Below, in pieces: positions 22,206 through 56,732 of a DNA stretch of 64,000 bases. The stretch is from Phallusia mammillata. Its lineage: Eukaryota. The position numbers and the translations under genes are program-made. Numbering within the stretch: the first letter of the stretch is position 1; every line of letters starts with the position of its first letter. The notes beneath the pieces were generated by a model. The model worked only from the letters and a program-made list of their open reading frames with translations, was not told the DNA's origin and ran no database searches. The stretch is taken from assembly GCA_965637545.1 (NCBI GenBank), contig OZ281498.1:3100001-3164000 (forward strand), read 5' to 3'.

Positions 22206-25200
22206 ATGCCACTACTTGAAAATGTTCCTGGTAGATGCGGGTACCCTGTGATTGGTGAAACATCAGTAGAATTTTACAGGTTTGTTGAATATTTGCCTAT
22301 GTATGGTTTGATTGCTTGTGCATAACCTTTAATTGTTTTAGAGACCCGGTGAAGTATGTAAACAGCAGAAACTGCCATCACACATCGGAAATATTTCTTG
22401 TCAGATTTTTAAATAACCCAACCATATTTATTTCGTCGCCCTGGCTAATTAAAGAACTTCTTAATGGTAAGTGTAAACTAAAAAACTGGTAGAAGGAATT
22501 GTGCCATTGATCTTAACAAATATAAAATACGACCACTTTAAATTGATAATTAAATTAAAGTACAGTGCTTTTTATTGCAGAAAAGTTTCATGATTTTGGA
22601 TTTGGGTACAAAGCATTTCTGCAGAAAATCTATGGTGACAACATCCTTTTTCACGACGGTGCTCATGCTGAGACATTACGATCATTGTTCGAACCATTGT
22701 TTCAAGATTCAACAAAATATCAACAATGTTTTGACAGGTAGATATCTTTTTTTGTGATATCATATGTGTTTAGCAAAATCTCTGAATATGGATATATAAA
22801 AAAACATTCATTTGGGATTACCAAACACTGTTTTTGTTTCTTTCCAGTGTGATTGATCCATTTGTTTCATCACTGAAAGGAAGGTGGGTTATTAATAATT
22901 TATAAAACAGACACATTTATTGAGTCTTTACTGTATGACATGTTTTAGTTAAGAATTCTTTTTGAGAAATGATTTTTTTACCATAGAACATTATGTAATT
23001 GGCTTGGACCATAGAAATTTTTTAAAGATGCTTGTTGTACGTTGGTTATATGTTAGCCAAGCACAAACTTACAATAATGTGTGTTTTGCATGACATATAG
23101 GCATGATGTGCCAATTTATGAAGAAATTAAACATATGATGACAAAGTTATGTCTGCAATTATTTCTTGGTTTGGATGTTTCCACATCTGAAGAGGTGGTT
23201 GAAAATATACAAGATCTTGCAACTAAACATTGGCATGGTAATAAACTTTATAATTGTGTTATGTCATGTGAGCATTATATCTTTTGATGAAAGCTATGTG
23301 TTGTGATTGAATACGGACTAATCCAGGTCTTCTAACTTGGACAATGGCCCCATTTGGACACACTTTTGAGGTTAAAGTGTGTGGCTGGTATACAATTTAG
23401 TTACACAGTACATTATTTCTGTTTGTCTTCTGTTTGGGGGTGAAAAACTTCATGTCTAGACTAATCTAATGTTAGGAGGATGAAACAAGGATGTTAAAAA
23501 GCCCTTGTCTAAACTTTATTTTGCAGGTATTATATCTGTTCCCATCAGCATTAGAGTTCCGATGGGAGGACCTTCTACATTTGCTCAAGCACTACAAGCC
23601 AAGGAAAAGCTGCTAGTTGCCATTAGGAAAGTTATTGCACAATCTCATTATCAGAGTGGTAAGCACATGTTTGTTCATACATTTTCTGGTAACCATTTCT
23701 GACAAAGAGAGTTCATAGTTGTTGTTTGCAGGACAACAATTGAGGATAAAACTCTTTATAAACACTTAGTGGCACGTTTTAACAGGATTATGGAAACCTA
23801 ATATGCCTATGACAACTGCCAAGACAATTTGAAGACGTGTGTTTTTAGTGCCACACAAAGGACATTCATGTGGTGTACTGAGTGGTCTTGGGGGCATTGT
23901 TCAGCTCTAGTTATATTAAGCATTCATTCAAGTATTGCGATGGTGCAAAGCTTGGAATTTGTCCACTAATCTTGTATTCCCGTTTTCGATGCTTTCAAAC
24001 AGTTTCATAAATTTACATAAATATGCTAAATATACTGGATACAAATAATTATTAAACCGGCGAACGACCACATTACATACATTGCTAGTCGCAAAACACT
24101 CCGGTGGTAACATATTTTTTCCAAGCGTGTTTATGGAAATTTATGTGCGTTATGTGTTGTTTTAACATGTCTAACTACCTTTAAATCAAATCCAAATCCA
24201 GTGTATACATACAGTAATAAATTTTCACGTATCTCCGCAGGCTGCAGGAACGTACTGCAGAGCATGCAAAGCATCGAATTCCCTGATGACAAAACGGCCG
24301 AGCAGCATCTGCTTATGTTCGTCTCCGCACTTATACCCAAAGCATTCGCCTCAATTCTCAACTCTTTTGTGTTAGCAATGTCAGGAAGCAAAAAGGTTGG
24401 TTCGGACACACACAAACAACTGTGGCCGTCGCATTTTGCCTGCGGTGTTTCACAGTAGCAGACTCATGCAAAGGCTATGCGAGTGCGTATATTGATATAT
24501 TGTGGTCATTTTCGTTGCTACAAAAAAATAGACCTGTCTTGGTTGATGTACAAGACATCGCTGTTAGGACACAAAACGGACATTTTCCAAGCTATTTTAT
24601 GCCACACGTTATAAGTATTATTAAAAAAACTATAAATTCATCAAACACTGCAAGTCTTTTTTCCTTAAGAAATTTATTTATAATTTCTGCTTTTCTAAAG
24701 TAATTATACCGTAATTAACGACGTAAATTACGTTTGCAAAATAAATACTCAGGTTAGTGTGTCTAAATGCTCGTACCAAATAAACATATTAAATTGTAAT
24801 TGTCGCCACAGTGAATGATCCCTTTATTGTAATTTAGGTGAACTTTGTATTATTTTAGCTTTGAATTGTGTGCTTTCTTGTTTAGAAAGTTTGGAGACAA
24901 CGAGCAATCGCCGATGAAAATTTTCTTGCTGACGCTTTACTTGAAGTGGAACGGTTGTGGCCTCCTTTTTTCGGCGGACGTCGATTGGCACTGAAACAAA
25001 CCACAGTTGGACGATACAAAATTCCTAAGGTAACAAACGCATCCTCTGTTTTAAGCAGAGTCGTGTTCCATTTTTCATTGTTTGAGTATGGGGCAACGCA
25101 TTAACTATTGGTGGCAATTAAGGTAGTCAAATCATATTGTTTGTATATGCGATTTAAGAATATGCTAGATTTTAGTAATTAATTGACTTTTAAGTTGCCA

Positions 25201-46908: not shown

Positions 46909-47125
46909 CAGTGGTTCTCAAACTCGGTTTTCGGGGCCGCATGCGGCTCTTAACTACTTATATTGCGGCTCGCAACAGACCTCAGAAAACCACCAAACAT
47001 TGCTATTTTAGCTTTCAAAGTCATCTTCTTTAGTGATTTTCTCAAGGTATCGTTTTTTTGCGGCTCCCTACACACTTAAAAAAATACCATTTGGGCCCGA
47101 CAATAAAAAAGTTTGAGAACCACTG
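46909..47125. mobile_element. hAT-type MITE, 217 bp
   Basis: CAGTGGTTCTCAAACT...AGTTTGAGAACCACTG; TSD AACTACAC / AACTACAG. Confidence 0.9.
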
Positions 47126-47390
47126 AACTACAGTGTGGTGACCAACTTTTTTGCAAGGTGTTTACTGTTAGACATTGTTTGTGTTTCCCTTAAACAGACA
47201 CAAAAATGGATTGCATCATTAATAGGCAAAAATTAATCAAAACAAGTCACAGACATTTGTAACTGTAAATTTATTTTGAAAAAAATTAAATCATCAGGTG
47301 AAAATCTGCAATTTGTAGGTAACCAAACAGTGTAATAGTGATATTAGTGAACTTCAAATTACTGCATCAATGAAAAGATACAAATCAATC

Positions 47391-49461
47391 TCATGCTATA
47401 ACTTCGCTTCGTTCTTTGCAGACCACATAGAAAACAATAGTTGCCACAATCAGAGCAAGCAACTCTGAACGAATCCATAATTTTGATGAGAGACCCTGTT
47501 ACAAATTTGTCATTGTTACAAAACTGAAAAATATCTTTATTTAGTCAATTAAATTCGTACCGGATGTTTAAATTCAACCTGAAACAGTTCTTTCACAGAA
47601 TTTATATCCTGGGAGCTTCTGATTGCTTTTCTCAGATTAGAGTAGCCTTCCTCATCAAAGAATCTTTTACAAATAATTGTGATTTATTTTAAACTTAATT
47701 AACAAATTTTGCACAGTTACAATTATTCTTACCTAACTTTGTACATTTTGCTTGCTTGGACTAAAGAACTGCTAGTCCAGCTAACTTGAAAGTTATTTCC
47801 TTCTGGGGATTTTGTGACTGGAATTTGTGTTCCCTCAACATCAGCAAACAGCAGCAAATCCTGCCAATTGTTGTTTCAATTACTAGTACATTATGTTTTT
47901 GCACTTAATGATAAATATGTAACAGGTAATATGAACAGGTGGTGAACTACCTTAGCTGTTAATCAAATGACAAGCAACTTCCAAACTATAGAGCATGGCA
48001 GTTATATGTTTAAACTTTTTTAAACTGTTTGCAAGCCATTTTTTAGGACAAAAAACTATTTTCTTGCATTCGGGTTCTGCAAGTGCACAGATAATAAGAA
48101 ATCTGAATGTTTCGTAACATGAAATAGGAATTGTTTAATTTGTTTTAAATGTTACTATTTCACTATATTATTCAACATATTATTCCACAAAGTTGTTTTA
48201 CAACATGATTGTTTCCAAAGGCACAATAGGCAATAAATTTTTGCATTAATGTTAAACCCAGAGTGACAGATCCTAATAAATAAACCTTAGAACACCCTTG
48301 TTTTAAGGGCATGAAAATAAAAAAATAATGTGATGATATATGTCTTCTTATTTTGCAAACATTATACTTTCAGCAAAAGATGTTTGAAACACTAAGAACG
48401 TGGTTTAAAAAAGCTACTATAAAACATGACTACAACAAAAGACATAAACAAAATGCAGGTAAAGTTATAAGCAAAACTTCAATTGCCCCCACATACGATC
48501 TGCCCCTTTTGAAAACTGTTGCTTAAAAGCCTAACTGGAAAACACTGAGGCTATAAGAATAAAAAATGCTTATTACAACAATAGCACCTGTAAACAATAT
48601 CCTCATGCTACACAGAATAGAGTATAAAACTAAGTTATGTGCCTTTTGGGAAGGAGTGCATAATAAATTAAATACTGGATATCAAGCTGACTTTTACACA
48701 CCAGTGGACAAGTAAAATAGCAAGTGGCAACAATTATTATGTGAATGGAACCTGTGTCACATAAATGTTGACACTAAAACATTTGGATACTTAACAAATG
48801 CATTGGCTGTAGAGGTTTGGTACTATTTAAAACAGCTTGCTCGCTGCAAGCTAATAATATTTTTCATATCTTAAAAACGCAGGAGCTTCAAGTAATTAAA
48901 ATAACACTATTATCTAACCTCTGATACCTAGACTTTGCACAGGCTAAGTACATGCAAAGTAGACTAAGCGGATTGTAGTTTTACATGGCACGCCAGACTG
49001 TCTCTTAAACAACAACCTACACTTAATTTGGTCAAAGTGTTTGAAAAAAAACATAGTTTTGGCACACAAATTCTTTAAAAGCACTATTTTTAAGCTAAGA
49101 TATATAATTTTGCAGCGGTTGAACTGCTGCTCTTGGTTACTTACATCAACCTTGTTTTTGCATTTAAGTGTAAATTCAACAACAACCGCTGAACTTTGAC
49201 TTAATTTTTCATTGTTGCTTGTGTAATGTGAAAAGGAGGGAGTTGGCTGTACGCAAGTGTTTGCTGTTGCACCTGTGGAAGAAAAATCGGCGTCAATAAC
49301 CAATGTACATTTACAACTCAAGATTTTAAAGATATAAACCAAACAACATTAAAGACTGTAAAGTTACAACTTCTTTGCCTACGGTTTTTGAAAGAGAGTC
49401 ATTGCATACCTCCAAATAGTACAAAAATAAAAGCAAAGTTGATCAAACGCTGGAAACCCAT
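47391..49461 (-). CDS. SSR4: Translocon-associated protein subunit delta (TRAP-delta), 5 coding exons, 171 aa
   Basis: Exons 49461-49410, 49272-49145, 47860-47733, 47663-47561, 47495-47391, all phases consistent. Signal peptide, then CVQPTPSFSHYTS...VEFTLKCKNKV, LFADVEGTQIPVTK...FQVSW, RFFDEEGYSNLRKA, WIRSELLA and a TM helix. Probable 5'UTR exon with a donor near 49620. Confidence 0.95.
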
Positions 49462-50269: not shown

Positions 50270-50661
50270 ACCACTTGCTATATTTGTGACGTAACAGTCA
50301 CTCGATTGCATCTCCTTGCAGTCAGGCGAGGTGTTAGTTTTAAATTGATTGGAGTGCTAGCAGCGTGCGATCCTTCGAAAATATATTTTTGCAAAAAAAG
50401 ACAGATCGATAATGGAGCTAGAGGTTTTCCAGAAAGAATGGACAAACTATTTTTTAGTAAAAATAAGTGATAAACTTGTATGCCTTGTTTGTTGCAAACA
50501 TGTAGCAGCAAAGAAAAAATCAAATCTGGAGCGATATATAAAACCGCTTGTGTGCTTTGGGTATTTTTACACGGAATTTGAAAGTAAAAAAATATTTGGT
50601 CCGCCCGAAAATGTTGTGCAATTCATGCGGCCTGCAGTAGTAAGTAGGTTTCCCACCCCTG
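50270..50661 (+). mobile_element. 5'-truncated copy of the 1216-1779 hAT element with a transposase N-terminal remnant
   Basis: Collinear with ~1400-1779 and ends GGTTTCCCACCCCTG; ORF 50412 MELEVFQKEWTNYFLVKISDKLVCLVCCKHVAAKKKSNLERY matches the FQ.EW..YF...K.VCL.C...A.K..NL.RHY start of Buster/SPIN/GTF2IRD2-type transposases. Confidence 0.8.
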
Positions 50662-51568
50662 CTTTAAGACCTTCGCCTTGGACCGTATGACACGAACGTA
50701 GAACTTATTTGGTTTTGTTTATCGATTCTAAACTGAGCAATATTCCAACAGCAGAAATACGTTTGAGAATTCAACGTTGAGTAAATCCGATAGTACAATA
50801 GGATAGCAATACAGAATGAAAGGGACTAAGAATGTTTTTAAGTACCCTTGCTAGCGCACTGTAGAATGCCAGACTATTGTCCACGTAGGGGGATGTAACT
50901 GGGCAACCGCAAATAGAGTAGGACCCTTGTTGGACACAGTAAGAAAGCGTCAGAACTTATTACATGATTACATGAGGGCTATTGAGTTTACCAAACTAGA
51001 ACACTAATACCAATTTGTTACACTGTTGTATATGTAAAGAAACCGATAAAAATGCAGCCTGTATTACTTTATGTGATCGCCGCCCAAACATTTTTAGATT
51101 TCCAACCATGTACTGAAGAATACGCTAGAGAACGGCCACAGGCCGTTTCAAAAACTAACTAATTATAACGCGTGACAGCCACGATTCTTATGGAGTTTGA
51201 TAAGACCGTGTATATAATGAGTAGAATTAAGGTTTAAAAACCCACAAACCGTTTCGCACCGGACTGGATACCTTTGCCCAAACCGAAACAAAATCAGAAC
51301 CAGAAAGTATTTTTTTAATATTACATTTTTTTTAAAACCTGAACTGAACCCAAACCCCAAAATCAACACATAATGAACCCAAACCGCACCTAAAGACCTG
51401 CTTTAAGTACTAGTAAACATTTTAAATAAACTTTACCTTTTGGTCATGGGATTTATTTTTACTCCACTCTTCCTCGCGTTAAAAACGCGCGGTGCTAAGC
51501 ATTTACTGGATCTCGTTTGGTGAAGCGAACAGTTTTTTTCGCAAAAGTTCAACAAATAGACAACAATC

Positions 51569-52958
51569 ATGACTGTAAGTTAAGAGTTCTAATTTATTGT
51601 CATTAAAGTAGCTTTTTTAGGGTTGCATTGTATTCGTATAAAAGGACGAACTGTTAGTAAATGGAGCTGAACACTTTTAGGTTTCCATTTTGGTTAAAGG
51701 GTTAAAATATCAACAACAACTTACCAATGCAACCCAGATATAAAAAGCTTCAATACGTTTTTATTTGCTGTTAGCAAAAATGCATGTCTTTAGGGCCATT
51801 CTAGCCCTGTCACTTCAAATTCGATGTATTGCATGGTAATCCAAATTTGTGATTCTCCGGTTTTTACTATTAACAACTATTAATACCGGTAACAATTTTA
51901 CTAAGTACTAAAGCACAAACTCTATTACATTACGACTTATTAAATCGTTTTACCCTTAAAGATTATTAAAACATGTTTTTGGTGTTTGCCTACTTTCAGA
52001 CCTTGCCTATGAACCCAAAGCCATTTCTAAATGCTCTTACTGGAAAGCCTGTTCTAGTAAAACTGAAATGGGGAATGGAGTATAAAGGTTACCTTGTGTC
52101 AGTTGATGGCTACATGAACATGCAGTTGGCCAACACCGAAGAGTATATTGAAGGGGCTTTATCTGGCCATCTTGGTGAAGTATTAATCAGGTCACAAAAT
52201 GTTATTTCTTTTGTAAAATTATGGTCTCTTCGAAGCGGTATTTGGGAGATCAGGTTTTATAGCCTTGTCTTGAGTCACACAAGCTACTAAACTTTTTTTT
52301 TACCTCTAAACTTGGGATTTAAAAAAATTCCAACTTATTTGTTTCTTGAAGTAGATTCAAAACCCCAAAATATTATAATTTATTGTGATAATATTGGCTA
52401 GTGTTTTTCAGCCAATCACTGTACTGCAAAAATCAATGCTGTTAAAGGATGTTTGCAGAAAACAATGTTAGGTAAAACTCCAACCCCAACTAGTCAGATA
52501 AAACACAACTGACCATTTAAGTACAGAGATGGATTAATTTCTCAGTTATTTGTCTTTTTGGGTTTCGTACTATTGCCATACACAGGTAAAGGTACTTGTA
52601 TTTTGGTTAGTAATATAAATTGCCGCAACATGACATAAACTTGTGTCAGGAACACAATTACAAACTAAGCTATTTGTAAGCTGTGATTTGTTTGACACTA
52701 CAAAAGATCATTTTGTATCAATAAAATGTGATGACATGTCTGCTTGTTAAAAATGTTTAGTGCTTTGTGGGCCTCCAGGTATGACTGGAAAATACTTTGG
52801 GCTACAATAATGGAACTTTAATGACCATGGATTTAGGTGTTATATGATTAACCAACACAAGGATAACTTTTATACATATGTTATTATGCAGATGCAACAA
52901 TGTCTTATACATCAAGGGTGTGGAAGAGGAAGACGAGGATGGTGAAATGAAAGAATAA
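51569..52958 (+). CDS. SNRPF: Small nuclear ribonucleoprotein F (SmF), 3 exons, 87 aa
   Basis: Exons 51569-51574 (ATGACT|gtaagt), 52000-52190, 52892-52958: [51 protein letters not shown]...[27 protein letters not shown]. Confidence 0.96.
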
Positions 52959-53131: not shown

Positions 53132-53422
53132 CATGAAAGCCACAATAGAAAAAAGTAGATGTTTTAAAATTTGCTATTTTTGAAAGTTTGCAATGCAGCA
53201 TATTTAAACACTATTATTATTCAACCCAATCAATCTATTACACAGGACAATTACGTACAAAGGCAATCATGTCTAATAAGTCAGAACCAGCAAGTTGCAG
53301 CTATTCCTATTCTTGTTGCTTGCTGTTATCCAGCATTATTTTTTATTCGTTTTTTTGTGGCTCCTTACACACTTGAAAAACTACCTTTTGGCCATGACAA
53401 CAAAAAAGGTTGAGAACCACTG
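53132..53422. mobile_element. hAT MITE of the 46909 family with damaged left end
   Basis: Right end GGCTCCTTACACACTTGAAAAA...GGTTGAGAACCACTG matches 47060-47125; GTTCAGAC (53124-53131) / GTTCAGAA may be the TSD. Confidence 0.6.
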
Positions 53423-54012
53423 GTTCAGAAAAACAAAACTGGGCCAACTTAAAATGAATATTACATTATAATGCTTCATAAAATATCCAGCAGCATGATA
53501 GGCTTGAATCTAAACATTACTGTTAAAAATCCACACGCCCGCAACACTAAAGTAATAGTGGTTTATTGAAAACACATTTGCAAATCACATCAACATGCAA
53601 GGGTCGAGAGAAAGGAATGCCCATAAAATTCTACCAAACCGATTTACCTGAAACATAAAAATCAATGTGTATGGTTTTGTATTCAGTTTGAACCACATTA
53701 ACTCAGAACATTGCAGAGACCACTGTGGAAATGTGATAGCATTTTGGGAACCTTTAATTTGGAATGTTGTATGGTGCAACAGGATTTGTATAGAATTACT
53801 TTTTAACTTTTCATGGAACTTTTCATACTTTTTAACTTTTCATGGAACAAATAAAATGAAGTTATAGGAGCTAAAACAATCAATTTTTAAATTATTGGCC
53901 GCACAGGTAAAAAGTATACTGTGACATTAACTTTTGATAGTGTAGGTATGGTATGACAAACATTTTTTATGAGAGTATCTTGAAAAAGTAGAAAACCATT
54001 GATAAAGACCAT

Positions 54013-54083
54013 ATGCATCAGAAAAAGCCGCAAAATTATCGTCACAATAATCAGACGGTAATTCCACATTATCATCATATGAC
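54013..54083 (-). ncRNA. SNORD65: Box C/D snoRNA, SNORD65/snR77-like, copy 1 (divergent flanks)
   Basis: C 54078-54072, D 54021-54018; both guides conserved although the flanks no longer match the 228-bp unit. Confidence 0.85.
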
Positions 54084-54250
54084 CTGGAATAAGACATACT
54101 AAAAACAAGAATAAATTAATTGGTATCCCACCTGAGCCACTTGGCCATTTGTAGAAAAGAAAACAACATGTTCTGGCAGCATCTACAAATGCAAAATACC
54201 TTGTATTAAAACACAGGAAACATTTTTTAAAGTAGTATATCACATGACAT

Positions 54251-54322
54251 CAACTTTAGAGCAAAGTCGCAGGATTTCTGTCACAAATTTCAGACGGTAA
54301 TTCCATAATTTCATCATAAAAC
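54251..54322 (-). ncRNA. Box C/D snoRNA copy 2, degenerate D box (possible pseudogene)
   Basis: C box, D' guide and D' intact; C' GTGACAG; D box reads CTAA (54259-54256); second guide diverged. Confidence 0.65.
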
Positions 54323-54463
54323 ACTATTAACAATAAAATGTAAACACACCTTTTGCTAAGCATCAAGAGGCATCTTGTTTCTCGTTGTTTGCTCTGTCAA
54401 ACAAAGATGTTTTTTTTATTAATTCATAGAGAAATGTTAAACTGCAAACATGAATATTAGCAC

Positions 54464-54534
54464 AAGAATCAGATAAAGCCGCAAAATTATCGTCACTGGT
54501 TTCAGACGGTAATTCCATTTTTTCATCATTTGGC
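54464..54534 (-). ncRNA. SNORD65: Box C/D snoRNA, SNORD65/snR77-like, copy 3
   Basis: C 54529-54523, D 54472-54469; boxes and guide intact. Confidence 0.88.
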
Positions 54535-54690
54535 TCATTGTAAAAAAACAACTGCTGTCAGAGATGTGTTCACTTACCACAAGTTCCAGCTTTTCCATAT
54601 TCATGTCAGGTCCATTTGTCTGTTCTGCTGAACAAAAATATCTCTGTTTATCTTTTTTTACTTGAAAACTACAAATTTAAAGATTAGCAC

Positions 54691-54761
54691 AAGAATCAGA
54701 TAAAGCCGCAAAATTATCGTCACTAGTTTCAGACGGTAATTCCATTTTATCATCATTTGGT
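54691..54761 (-). ncRNA. SNORD65: Box C/D snoRNA, SNORD65/snR77-like, copy 4
   Basis: C 54756-54750, D 54699-54696; boxes and guide intact. Confidence 0.88.
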
Positions 54762-54920
54762 TCAAACTAAAAAAAAACTGCCACAAAAGTTGATATAACT
54801 TACCACAAATTTCAGCCCTCCGCAATATTCATGTCAGGTTCATTCGTTTGTTCTGTCAAACAAAGATATCGCTATTAATTGATTTTTTAACTTTAAAACT
54901 ATGAATTTGAAGACTAGAAC

Positions 54921-54991
54921 AAGAATCAGATAAAGCCGCAAAATTATCAGCACTGGTTTCAGACGGTAATTCCAATTTATCATCATTTGGT
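54921..54991 (-). ncRNA. SNORD65: Box C/D snoRNA, SNORD65/snR77-like, copy 5
   Basis: C 54986-54980, D 54929-54926, same D' guide; C' is a variant (GTGCTGA). Confidence 0.82.
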
Positions 54992-55148
54992 TCAAAGAAA
55001 ATAAACTGCCACAAAAGTTGATATAACTTACCACAAATTTCAGCACTCTGCAATATTCATATCAGGTCTATCTATCTGTTCTGTCGAACAAAAATATCGC
55101 TGTTTATCTTCTGTTTTACTTGAAAACTACAAATTTAAAGATTAGCAC

Positions 55149-55219
55149 AAGAATCAGATAAAGCCGCAAAATTATCGTCACTGGTTTCAGACGGTAATTC
55201 CATTTTTTCATCATTTGGC
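55149..55219 (-). ncRNA. SNORD65: Box C/D snoRNA, SNORD65/snR77-like, copy 6
   Basis: All four boxes intact (C 55214-55208, D 55157-55154); 12-nt complement to 18S GCGGUAAUUCCA; 73 nt to the acceptor. Confidence 0.88.
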
Positions 55220-55376
55220 TCATTGTAAAAAACACCTGCTGTCAGAGATGTGTTCACTTACCACAAATTCCAGCTTTTCCATATTCATATCAGGTCCATC
55301 TATCTGTTCTGCTGAACAAAAATATCTCTGTTTATCTTCTCTTTTACTTGAAAACTACAAATTTAAAGATTAGCAC

Positions 55377-55447
55377 AAGAATCAGATAAAGCCGCAAAAT
55401 TATCGTCACTAGTTTCAGACGGTAATTCCATTTTATCATCATTTGTT
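55377..55447 (-). ncRNA. SNORD65: Box C/D snoRNA, SNORD65/snR77-like, copy 7
   Basis: C ATGATGA 55442-55436, guide TGGAATTACCGT + D' CTGA, C' GTGACGA, D CTGA 55385-55382; 70 nt to the 3' splice site. Confidence 0.88.
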
Positions 55448-55747
55448 CAATGTAAAAAACTTGTCAGAGATGTGTTAACTTACCACAGATTCCAGCACTT
55501 GACCATTCATGCAAAGTCCTTCCGACCTGCCCAGAACAAAAAGGTAAAATCTAAACTAGACTTTAAGAACAGCAGATTGTTACTTACCTTAATAACCTCC
55601 TTACAACACAAATACTAAATAAACTGCCTAACATAAAAACAACAACAAATGAAATATTGTAATATAACTTTATTTCCCATCAATATTGATATCTCAAAAC
55701 TGAAAGTCTTTGCATTCAGAATGAGTGTGAACGCTTCTTTTGAGAAT

Positions 55748-56732
55748 TTAGTCCAACTAGAAAAAAAACAAGCATAGTTTAAACAAGTGTGTGAAAAGCA
55801 TTTAAATTATTACAAAAATTGTGGAACTCAAAACACCTTGACAAAGCCAATGTCTTTGGCAAACTCTCTGAAGCATTGGCGAGAGATGTTCAATCCATAC
55901 TTTCTAATGAGGCCGTGACGGTTTCCTGTGATGCGACTAAAACAAATGTGTACAACTTTAATATCAACCAACATACATGATCATTAACACAGCAATCATG
56001 TGGTCACTTGATAAATTAAGTCTCACTGCAGATTTTGTGGCTTTTAAAATGACCTTTGGTTCGATATGAATAAATTCAGACAAGATTCTATAAGTTTACA
56101 GTAAAAAAATAGTGGTTAATAGGTTTTCTCGGCCAAAGAGGGGGTTTGCAAAAACAAACAACAGTTTAACATGACTAACAGTGCCCTATAGTCTATATAT
56201 ACCAAACCACATTTGGACATGGTAGGTCACAAAATTACAACCTACTTATTTTTGGTGGTCGTAACACCACAGGGTGGGCAGTTTTGATGGTTACAAATAA
56301 ATACATGCAAAAATAAAAAGGTGTTTATTGCAGTTTAGGTGAGGGTTTCACAATCAAATTACACATAAACACTCATCACAGATGCGATACACCAGACAGT
56401 GTCATGCAAGTAGTTTTTAGTTTCAATGCTTATTTCTTTCATTAAGCTTCTGGAGAAACAAAGTTAGTTGTTGTAGTTTAAGTTGTGATGATTCTACCTG
56501 TGGTGCGTTTATATCTACATTTATATTATTAGATAAACAATGAAATAAAAGTGCAGCTGTTACAACATGAACTAATCTCTAAATGGCGGATTTGTGCCGG
56601 TCAACACTAAGGAATTCATTCATTTTGTGGCAGATTAATTTGTTGCACACGTAGTACATTAAATACATACCAGAATCGCGATCCGCGGCCGTATTTTCTA
56701 GGGTGAGAATGCCAGATGTTTTGGTGACCCAT
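55748..56732 (-). CDS. RPS29: 40S ribosomal protein S29 (uS14), 3 exons, 56 aa
   Basis: Exons 56732-56671, 55936-55837, 55756-55748: [56 protein letters not shown]; pyrimidine tract CTTCCTTTCTT upstream (TOP-like); AATAAA at 55674-55669. Confidence 0.97.

Follow-up and report, generated by a model that had tools for sequence, protein, structure and literature searches.

A satellite-like array beside RPS29 in Phallusia mammillata appears to be a row of seven intronic copies of an 18S rRNA methylation guide

What looks like a 228-bp satellite lies beside the ribosomal protein gene RPS29 in a 64-kb window of the Phallusia mammillata genome (contig OZ281498.1 of assembly GCA_965637545.1; the window is the whole stretch analyzed and contains no N), and the question raised by this locus is what the repeat encodes. 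An initial annotation had proposed a noncoding host gene carrying seven intronic copies of one small nucleolar RNA (snoRNA) of the box C/D class. This proposal turned out to be largely real, in that the apparent satellite seems to consist of a single ordinary rRNA methylation guide repeated seven times in a row, each copy in a predicted intron (Table 1).

The 16-mer formed by the guide and its D′ box has seven exact copies on the minus strand between positions 54051 and 55430, compared with 0.46 expected by chance even when three mismatches are allowed, which confirms the copy number originally proposed. The copies belong to seven box C/D snoRNA genes of 61 nt each from C box to D box (54018 to 55442), and the 12-nt guide and D′ box are invariant in all of them. 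The box pattern first described holds for the C box ATGATGA, present in all seven copies 12 nt ahead of the guide, and for the D box CTGA, present at +58 to +61 in six of them. It does not extend to copy 6, where the D box reads CTAA and the C′ box is degenerate, or to copy 3, where the C′ box is GTGCTGA. The layout that defines a box C/D guide (terminal boxes C, RUGAUGA, and D, CUGA, plus internal D′ and C′ boxes) was found in six of the seven copies; copy 6 is probably impaired and, judged by its boxes, appears to be decaying. No eighth copy was detected in the window with a profile built from the seven. A generic scan returned an isolated 56-nt C-box/D-box candidate on the plus strand at 23135-23190.

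Paired with the conserved stretch of eukaryotic 18S given in PMC3940700, the guide is predicted to form a 12-bp duplex of -18.4 kcal/mol. Under the fifth-nucleotide rule for the methylation site (PMC8162545), the base to consider is the fifth before the D′ box CUGA, an A, which stands opposite the U of GCGGU, the site of human Um627 and yeast Um578. Both the pairing and the D+5 placement given in the initial annotation were thus reproduced. The guide and D′ box also equal the consensus of the Rfam snoR77Y model, a member of the clan CL00057, which unites SNORD65 (HBII-135), snR77, and snoR77Y with their targets Um627, Um578, and Um580 (PMC3511168, PMC8817022); the clan target belongs to helix 18, within the decoding region (PMC2794176). 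Six copies matched snoR77Y with E values of 1e-4 to 4e-3 and scores of 31.5 to 37.6 bits against a cut-off of 52, and copy 6 gave a weak match to snoZ7/snoR77. The covariance model check proposed earlier therefore recovered the expected clan, but none of the copies reached the Rfam gathering threshold. An identical C-guide-D′-C′-D layout was found in 28 loci by a pattern scan of metagenomes, and as several of these evident homologues also score just 32 to 42 bits, the missed cut-off reflects a narrow Rfam model. Overall, the assignment of the predicted array RNAs to the SNORD65/snR77/snoR77Y clan, aimed at the helix-18 U of 18S rRNA, is supported.

The 28 metagenome loci carry one or two copies each, never more, and the pairs lie 1.4 to 2.1 kb apart. 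On one animal-looking contig (L036:1446-1681), a single snR77-type copy lies between a GTAAGT donor and a pyrimidine-rich AG acceptor; this eukaryotic contig sits inside a Coxiella metagenome-assembled genome and is probably host contamination of that assembly. On contigs L013, L016, and L031, an snR77-type guide is located directly beside a U14 (SNORD14) gene, in a cluster that looks conserved. Weak matches to SNORD49, SNORD44, Afu_300, and TtnuCD7 were dismissed as box-only resemblance. Within the array, the element TGCGGCTT before the D box (54485-54478 and equivalents, minus strand) is kept in six copies and reads TGCGACTT in copy 6. Extra base pairing next to the target is known as a concept (PMC3116282), and pairing with 18S AGCCGC beside the target is conceivable for the element UGCGGCUU, which precedes the D box; its GGCT is present in only 8 of 20 homologues. 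This pairing is a lead only, being not significant against shuffled sequences (p about 0.10) and breaking the D+5 rule at that site.

Sequence identity is distributed very unevenly within the array. Among copies 1 to 5, the mean is 96% for the snoRNA bodies, as opposed to 73% for the exons, 74% for the 5′ intron flanks, and 78% for the 3′ intron flanks. A neutral satellite would not behave in this way, and the far stronger conservation of the bodies therefore indicates that the snoRNAs are under selection. An ordinary satellite or assembly duplication with a chance resemblance to snoRNAs is hardly credible, although Tandem Repeats Finder (TRF) does report a 228-bp tandem repeat and no copy matches Rfam at the gathering threshold. 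It is already contradicted by the Rfam matches, the seven exact 16-mers, and the body-versus-flank identities. Furthermore, conservation peaks exactly on the boxes and the guide, the repeat leaves out two copies that have been retained between unrelated flanks, the units differ by about 17% with a longest exact run of 104 nt, and the guide is that of the Rfam consensus.

Every host exon reported here is a prediction from splice-like signals. The predicted exons measure 43 to 51 nt and the introns 167 to 184 nt, with donors 32 to 53 nt ahead of the C boxes (GTG/GTAAGT for copies 1 to 5, AAG/GTGTGT for copy 6, and CAG/GTGGGA for copy 7). From D box to acceptor, copies 1 to 6 measure 73, 73, 73, 71, 75, and 73 nt; the distance in copies 1 to 5 becomes 68 to 70 nt when measured to the earlier AG of CAGCAG, in agreement with the 68 to 75 nt previously given for five units. 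About 70 nt upstream from the 3′ splice site is the reported optimum for an intronic C/D snoRNA (PMC8178906), as the initial annotation had also stated, and one snoRNA per intron at 71 to 75 nt before the acceptor is predicted for copies 1 to 6. With rough scores, whose thresholds were set post hoc, the expectation at random positions is 0.063 for such an acceptor and 0.037 for a donor-like site; copy 6, despite its unrelated flanks, has both.

These signals also bear on whether the snoRNAs could instead be cut from an unspliced polycistronic read-through RNA, as in plant, yeast, or trypanosome clusters, with the splice-like signals being incidental. Such processing would suit the modest acceptor scores, the branch-point motifs that are not evident before several acceptors, and the clustering of homologues in other eukaryotes with other snoRNAs such as U14. 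However, six of the 27 GTAAGT on the minus strand of the window sit within the 1-kb stretch of the array at a fixed distance, the D-to-AG distance is held at 71 to 75 nt in diverged introns, and there are no conserved stems for an RNase III-type cut. We consider this route very improbable.

The host looks noncoding in its own predicted exons. In an exon-by-exon test, the two internal exons before copies 3 and 4 have stops in all frames, and hence no protein runs through the spliced array. The earlier statement that no frame stays open across a unit does not hold literally for the unspliced DNA, where frames of 79 codons (54440-54676) and 120 codons (53890-54249) are open. The longest ATG-started frames have 55 to 63 codons, and Pfam returned no match for the open frames across array units, where tested. 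The predicted first host exon is followed by a 61-nt intron without a snoRNA; this exon could alternatively be a lengthened version of the RPS29 last exon. An AATAAA (54420-54415, minus strand) within predicted intron 5, immediately ahead of the two divergent copies, could give an earlier 3′ end that excludes copies 6 and 7. At 53654-53642 (minus strand), a strong acceptor is joined to an immediate donor-like GTAAAT (TTTCAG/GTAAAT), resembling a recursive-splice or zero-length-exon site.

The history of the copies differs between the two parts of the row. Successive snoRNA copies are spaced by 228, 228, 230, 227, 212, and 239 bp, and because the TRF array spans copies 1 to 5 only, the uniform 227- to 230-bp unit with its GTAAGT donor, initially described for the whole locus, applies to five copies and not to seven. 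In comparisons involving copies 6 or 7, identity is 81% in the body and 45 to 50% in the flanks, which is the level of shuffled sequence. Judged from these identities, expansion by whole exon-plus-intron duplication is evident for copies 1 to 5 only; the flanks of copies 6 and 7 bear no trace of a common origin, and these two copies are the older ones. Within copies 1 to 5, identity forms a mosaic: the bodies of copies 1 and 4 and of copies 2 and 5 are the same, exon plus 5′ flank are similar between 2 and 5 and between 3 and 4, and a higher-order repeat at an offset of 686 bp reaches 91% over 383 nt, including 104 nt exact. This mosaic fits unequal crossing-over with later multiunit duplication or conversion. 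Birth-and-death, conversion, and divergent copies at the distal end have likewise been described for SNORD115/116 (PMC12429941).

Such turnover raises the possibility that only one or a few copies are functional. The others would then be recent duplicates evolving neutrally, or pseudogenes in decay, within an array prone to slippage whose exon-intron pattern is partly dead. The broken D box of copy 6 and the identity of copies 1/4 and 2/5 within the recent 686-bp duplication would be expected, and birth-and-death is the rule in snoRNA arrays (PMC12429941, PMC4063771). In contrast, the bodies are 93 to 100% alike, compared with 57 to 96% (means, 73 to 78%) for exons and intron flanks, a difference that short gene conversion could partly mimic, and both GTAAGT and the acceptor distance are preserved in all of units 1 to 5. 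This alternative is therefore rather unlikely. The further suggestion that duplication served to multiply one guide, implying selection for dosage, is unsupported; copy 6 appears to be decaying.

How the host is transcribed depends on its junction with RPS29. The first host acceptor lies 41 to 45 nt past the RPS29 AATAAA, and 41 to 87 nt separate this AATAAA from the first acceptor and donor. The array abuts the RPS29 3′ end, and no space that could hold a promoter is obvious between them. The noncoding host gene of the initial annotation thus keeps its exons without a through frame but probably loses its stand-alone status. The host likely belongs to RPS29 transcription instead, as a downstream part arising by read-through or trans-splicing. 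A terminal oligopyrimidine (TOP)-like pyrimidine run is located at 56761-56751, at the RPS29 5′ end; this is the sole TOP-like start, and none was found at the RPS29-array junction. The same snoRNAs could derive from an independent noncoding gene of the GAS5/UHG type, whose own promoter would overlap the RPS29 3′ end. An initiator-like TCATTT at about 55650, the strong donor on the first 61-nt intron, and the normal RPS29 poly(A) signal are compatible with such a gene, and dedicated noncoding hosts with short exons are common (PMC2653536). Nevertheless, the 41 to 87 nt available, the missing TOP-like start, and a junction sequence with the appearance of a cleavage element and then an acceptor make it unlikely.

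On these sequence grounds, we give spliced read-through and a spliced-leader downstream cistron roughly the same probability and consider an own promoter less probable than either. Intercistronic DNA is scarce or absent in ascidian operons, which trans-splicing resolves (PMC1488885), and the geometry of a spliced-leader operon, with neighbors on the same strand and less than 100 nt from the upstream 3′ end to the downstream acceptor, is present at this locus. A more specific and doubtful proposal is that the array forms the downstream, noncoding, spliced-leader trans-spliced cistron of an RPS29-headed operon, in which most or all copies would be expressed and kept by selection, tying the dose of the Um627 guide to ribosomal protein transcription. 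A literature search targeted at noncoding operon members of this kind found no description of them, which is weak evidence of absence. In RPS29 itself, exon 2 (55837-55936, minus strand) encodes Thr and Ser where two of the four Cys that usually serve as zinc ligands would be expected (CRITG, ISRQC); a Schizosaccharomyces pombe homologue (P0132) shows similar Cys losses, so ligand loss in RPS29 has precedent.

Overall, we favor an intronic snoRNA cassette driven by RNA polymerase II from the RPS29 promoter and regard it as reasonably probable. Polymerase II transcripts would pass the RPS29 poly(A) signal into a run of 43- to 51-nt noncoding exons and 167- to 184-nt introns, and the exons would be joined in one of two ways, by splicing onto RPS29 as its 3′ extension or following trans-splicing of the spliced leader at 55628/55624. 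The lariats would each be debranched and trimmed to a box C/D snoRNA of roughly 65 to 70 nt of the SNORD65/snR77/snoR77Y clan, and the spliced exons would be discarded. The D′ guide would direct fibrillarin to 2′-O-methylate the helix-18 uridine of 18S rRNA (human Um627, yeast Um578). Copies 6 and 7 would be old cis-duplicates and copies 1 to 5 the product of more recent unequal crossing-over of the whole exon-plus-intron unit, followed by multiunit duplication or conversion at the 686-bp offset. We infer splicing, expression, RPS29 dependence, and methylation in P. mammillata from the sequence.

Several observations weigh against this cassette. The RPS29 AATAAA is canonical and is followed by a GU-rich downstream element, so that most transcripts may end there, and in Ciona just 3 of 79 ribosomal protein genes are found in operons (PMC1488885). 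Every Rfam score is below the gathering cut-off, and the 18S pairing was computed with a conserved segment from the literature instead of Phallusia 18S itself. The D box of copy 6 is broken, and copy 7 has no acceptor near 70 nt: the AG found at 39 nt is weak, and the strong acceptor, which precedes the AATAAA at 53567, is 370 nt distant. The terminal stems are just 1 to 3 bp, and the introns yielded neither a stable fold nor an external stem that was consistent among them; an external duplex exceeds shuffled sequences in intron 1 alone (p 0.015) and not in the other introns, and an external stem CATCTCTG/CAGAGAT spotted by eye was rejected as inconsistent across units. Lastly, an orthologous tunicate locus, sought through SmF/SSR4 neighbors and RPS29 exons, was not reached. 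Neither RPS29 nor the guide occurs within 10 kb of the metagenome SmF loci (L001-L003), the Clavelina SmF-SSR4 loci (L033, L034), or the Styela SSR4 locus (L035), and the RPS29 exon search returned fungi and algae but no tunicate. Exact look-ups of two window open reading frames gave no match, nor did viral contigs.

On the minus strand, a trypsin/EGF protease gene is followed by RPS29, the array, and then the convergent SmF gene. Intron 2 of SmF opens with a weak donor, AG/GTCACA (52191-52196, plus strand), and the public Phallusia SmF protein (P0001) was translated from a transcript retaining this intron. The SmF exon in the window is identical to this Phallusia entry, down to the tail read from the retained intron, and the SSR4 exon is likewise identical, which assigns the window to P. 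mammillata or to something that cannot be told apart from it. SSR4 (47391-49461, minus strand) and SmF (51569-52958, plus strand) are neighbors, head to head in Phallusia and on the same strand in Clavelina (L033/L034); the Styela SSR4 gene is intronless and located elsewhere. At 53340-53420 and 47050-47130, a short related repeat with GGTTCTCAA... ends, 81% identical over 68 nt to L001, has the look of a small transposon derivative, and a Spin-doc zinc-finger fragment is found at 50361-50687.

Table 1. Coordinates of the snoRNA copies, predicted host exons, and adjoining genes in the 64-kb window
Feature	Positions	Strand	Details
snoRNA copy 1	55382-55442	-	61 nt; guide 55419-55430, D′ box 55415-55418
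snoRNA copy 2	55154-55214	-	
snoRNA copy 3	54926-54986	-	C′ box variant GTGCTGA
snoRNA copy 4	54696-54756	-	Body identical to copy 1
snoRNA copy 5	54469-54529	-	Body identical to copy 2
snoRNA copy 6	54256-54317	-	C box, guide, and D′ intact; D box CTAA, TTGA 6 nt further; C′ degenerate
snoRNA copy 7	54018-54078	-	Every box intact; top Rfam score (37.6 bits); flanks unrelated to copies 1 to 5
Tandem array, 228-bp unit	54456-55496		TRF: 4.6 units, 83% matches; spans copies 1 to 5 only
Predicted first host exon	55588-55623	-	Acceptor AG 55628 or 55624; donor AAG/GTAAGT at 55587; 36-40 nt
Predicted exon before copy 1	55484-55526	-	43 nt
Predicted exon before copy 2	55262-55308	-	47 nt
Predicted exon before copy 3	55032-55080	-	49 nt; stops in all three frames
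Predicted exon before copy 4	54804-54852	-	49 nt; stops in all three frames
Predicted exon before copy 5	54578-54624	-	47 nt
Predicted exon before copy 6	54350-54393	-	44 nt; donor AAG/GTGTGT, resembles RPS29 intron-2 donor AAG/GTGTTT
Predicted exon before copy 7	54132-54182	-	51 nt; donor CAG/GTGGGA
Candidate last exon, uncertain	53562-53647	-	Strong acceptor 53648; AATAAA 53567-53562; weaker AG at 53979
RPS29-array junction	55624-55674	-	AATAAA 55674-55669; GU-rich tract about 55648-55630; acceptor AGs 55628, 55624
RPS29/uS14 gene	55748-56732	-	ATG 56732, stop 55748; Pfam Ribosomal_S14, E 7.7e-10
RPS29 coding exons	56732-56671, 55936-55837, 55756-55748	-	
SmF (SNRPF) gene	51569-52958	+	Convergent; stop 52958; far-side boundary of array

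The locus is well explained by known snoRNA biology, and no new class of RNA or mechanism is revealed. What is unusual is the combination, as predicted here, of a canonical rRNA guide filling all introns, in seven copies within 1.4 kb, in an invertebrate chordate, and joined to a ribosomal protein gene. The array adds a tunicate member to a deeply conserved guide family that is missed by standard Rfam thresholds and would be hidden by repeat maskers. It thereby bears on the many snoRNA families that tunicates have been reported to have lost, losses that may be detection failures (PMC5006418). It also reproduces the SNORD115/116 architecture on a small scale and with a canonical target, in an embryo model that is tractable, and would thus bring copy-specific expression, birth-and-death, and dose within reach of tests on 2 kb of DNA. 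Should trans-splicing off RPS29 indeed produce the host, operons would be used to coexpress rRNA modification guides with a ribosomal protein.

Compared with SNORD65 (HBII-135), snR77, and snoR77Y, the array copies have the C box, the D′ guide to 18S helix 18, the predicted target U, and the layout in common, but they are shorter (61 nt from C to D), score below the cut-off, have a weak terminal stem, and number seven in 1.4 kb. With ascidian spliced-leader operons, the locus shares neighbors on one strand and a gap of less than 100 nt between the 3′ end upstream and the acceptor downstream, although the operons described in Ciona join protein genes, mostly without intercistronic DNA and mostly unlike the type that bears an AATAAA, and rarely include ribosomal protein genes (PMC1488885). 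In Phallusia, by contrast, the AATAAA and perhaps 20 to 30 nt intervene, the downstream part is apparently noncoding, and leader addition is hypothetical.

Hosts of the GAS5/UHG type carry several families, usually with two to four copies each, under their own TOP promoter. The array resembles them in its short noncoding exons, in having one snoRNA per intron, and in cis-duplication into adjacent introns (PMC2653536), but a single family fills all of its introns, and its only TOP-like start is that of RPS29. The contrast with the usual multi-snoRNA hosts drawn in the initial annotation was nevertheless overstated. Cis-duplication within one host is the usual mode for C/D guides (PMC2653536, PMC8178906), 59.5% of human multimember C/D families share one host (PMC8178906), and exon-intron arrays of a single snoRNA are known (PMC3413130).

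SNORD115, SNORD116, and rat RBII-36/Bsr are orphan, imprinted, and eutherian and are present in tens to >100 copies. SNORD115/116 are carried by the Snurf-Snrpn read-through host, which, like the Phallusia array, follows a small housekeeping gene that encodes a protein, and repeat units of this type are about 1 kb or more. The Phallusia array shares with these clusters one C/D snoRNA per repeated intron between repeated noncoding exons (PMC3413130), with exons and intron flanks repeated along with the snoRNA in units 1 to 5 but not detectably for copies 6 and 7. In contrast to the orphan, imprinted, eutherian clusters, it appears to present a canonical 18S guide in an invertebrate chordate, in 228-bp units and seven copies.

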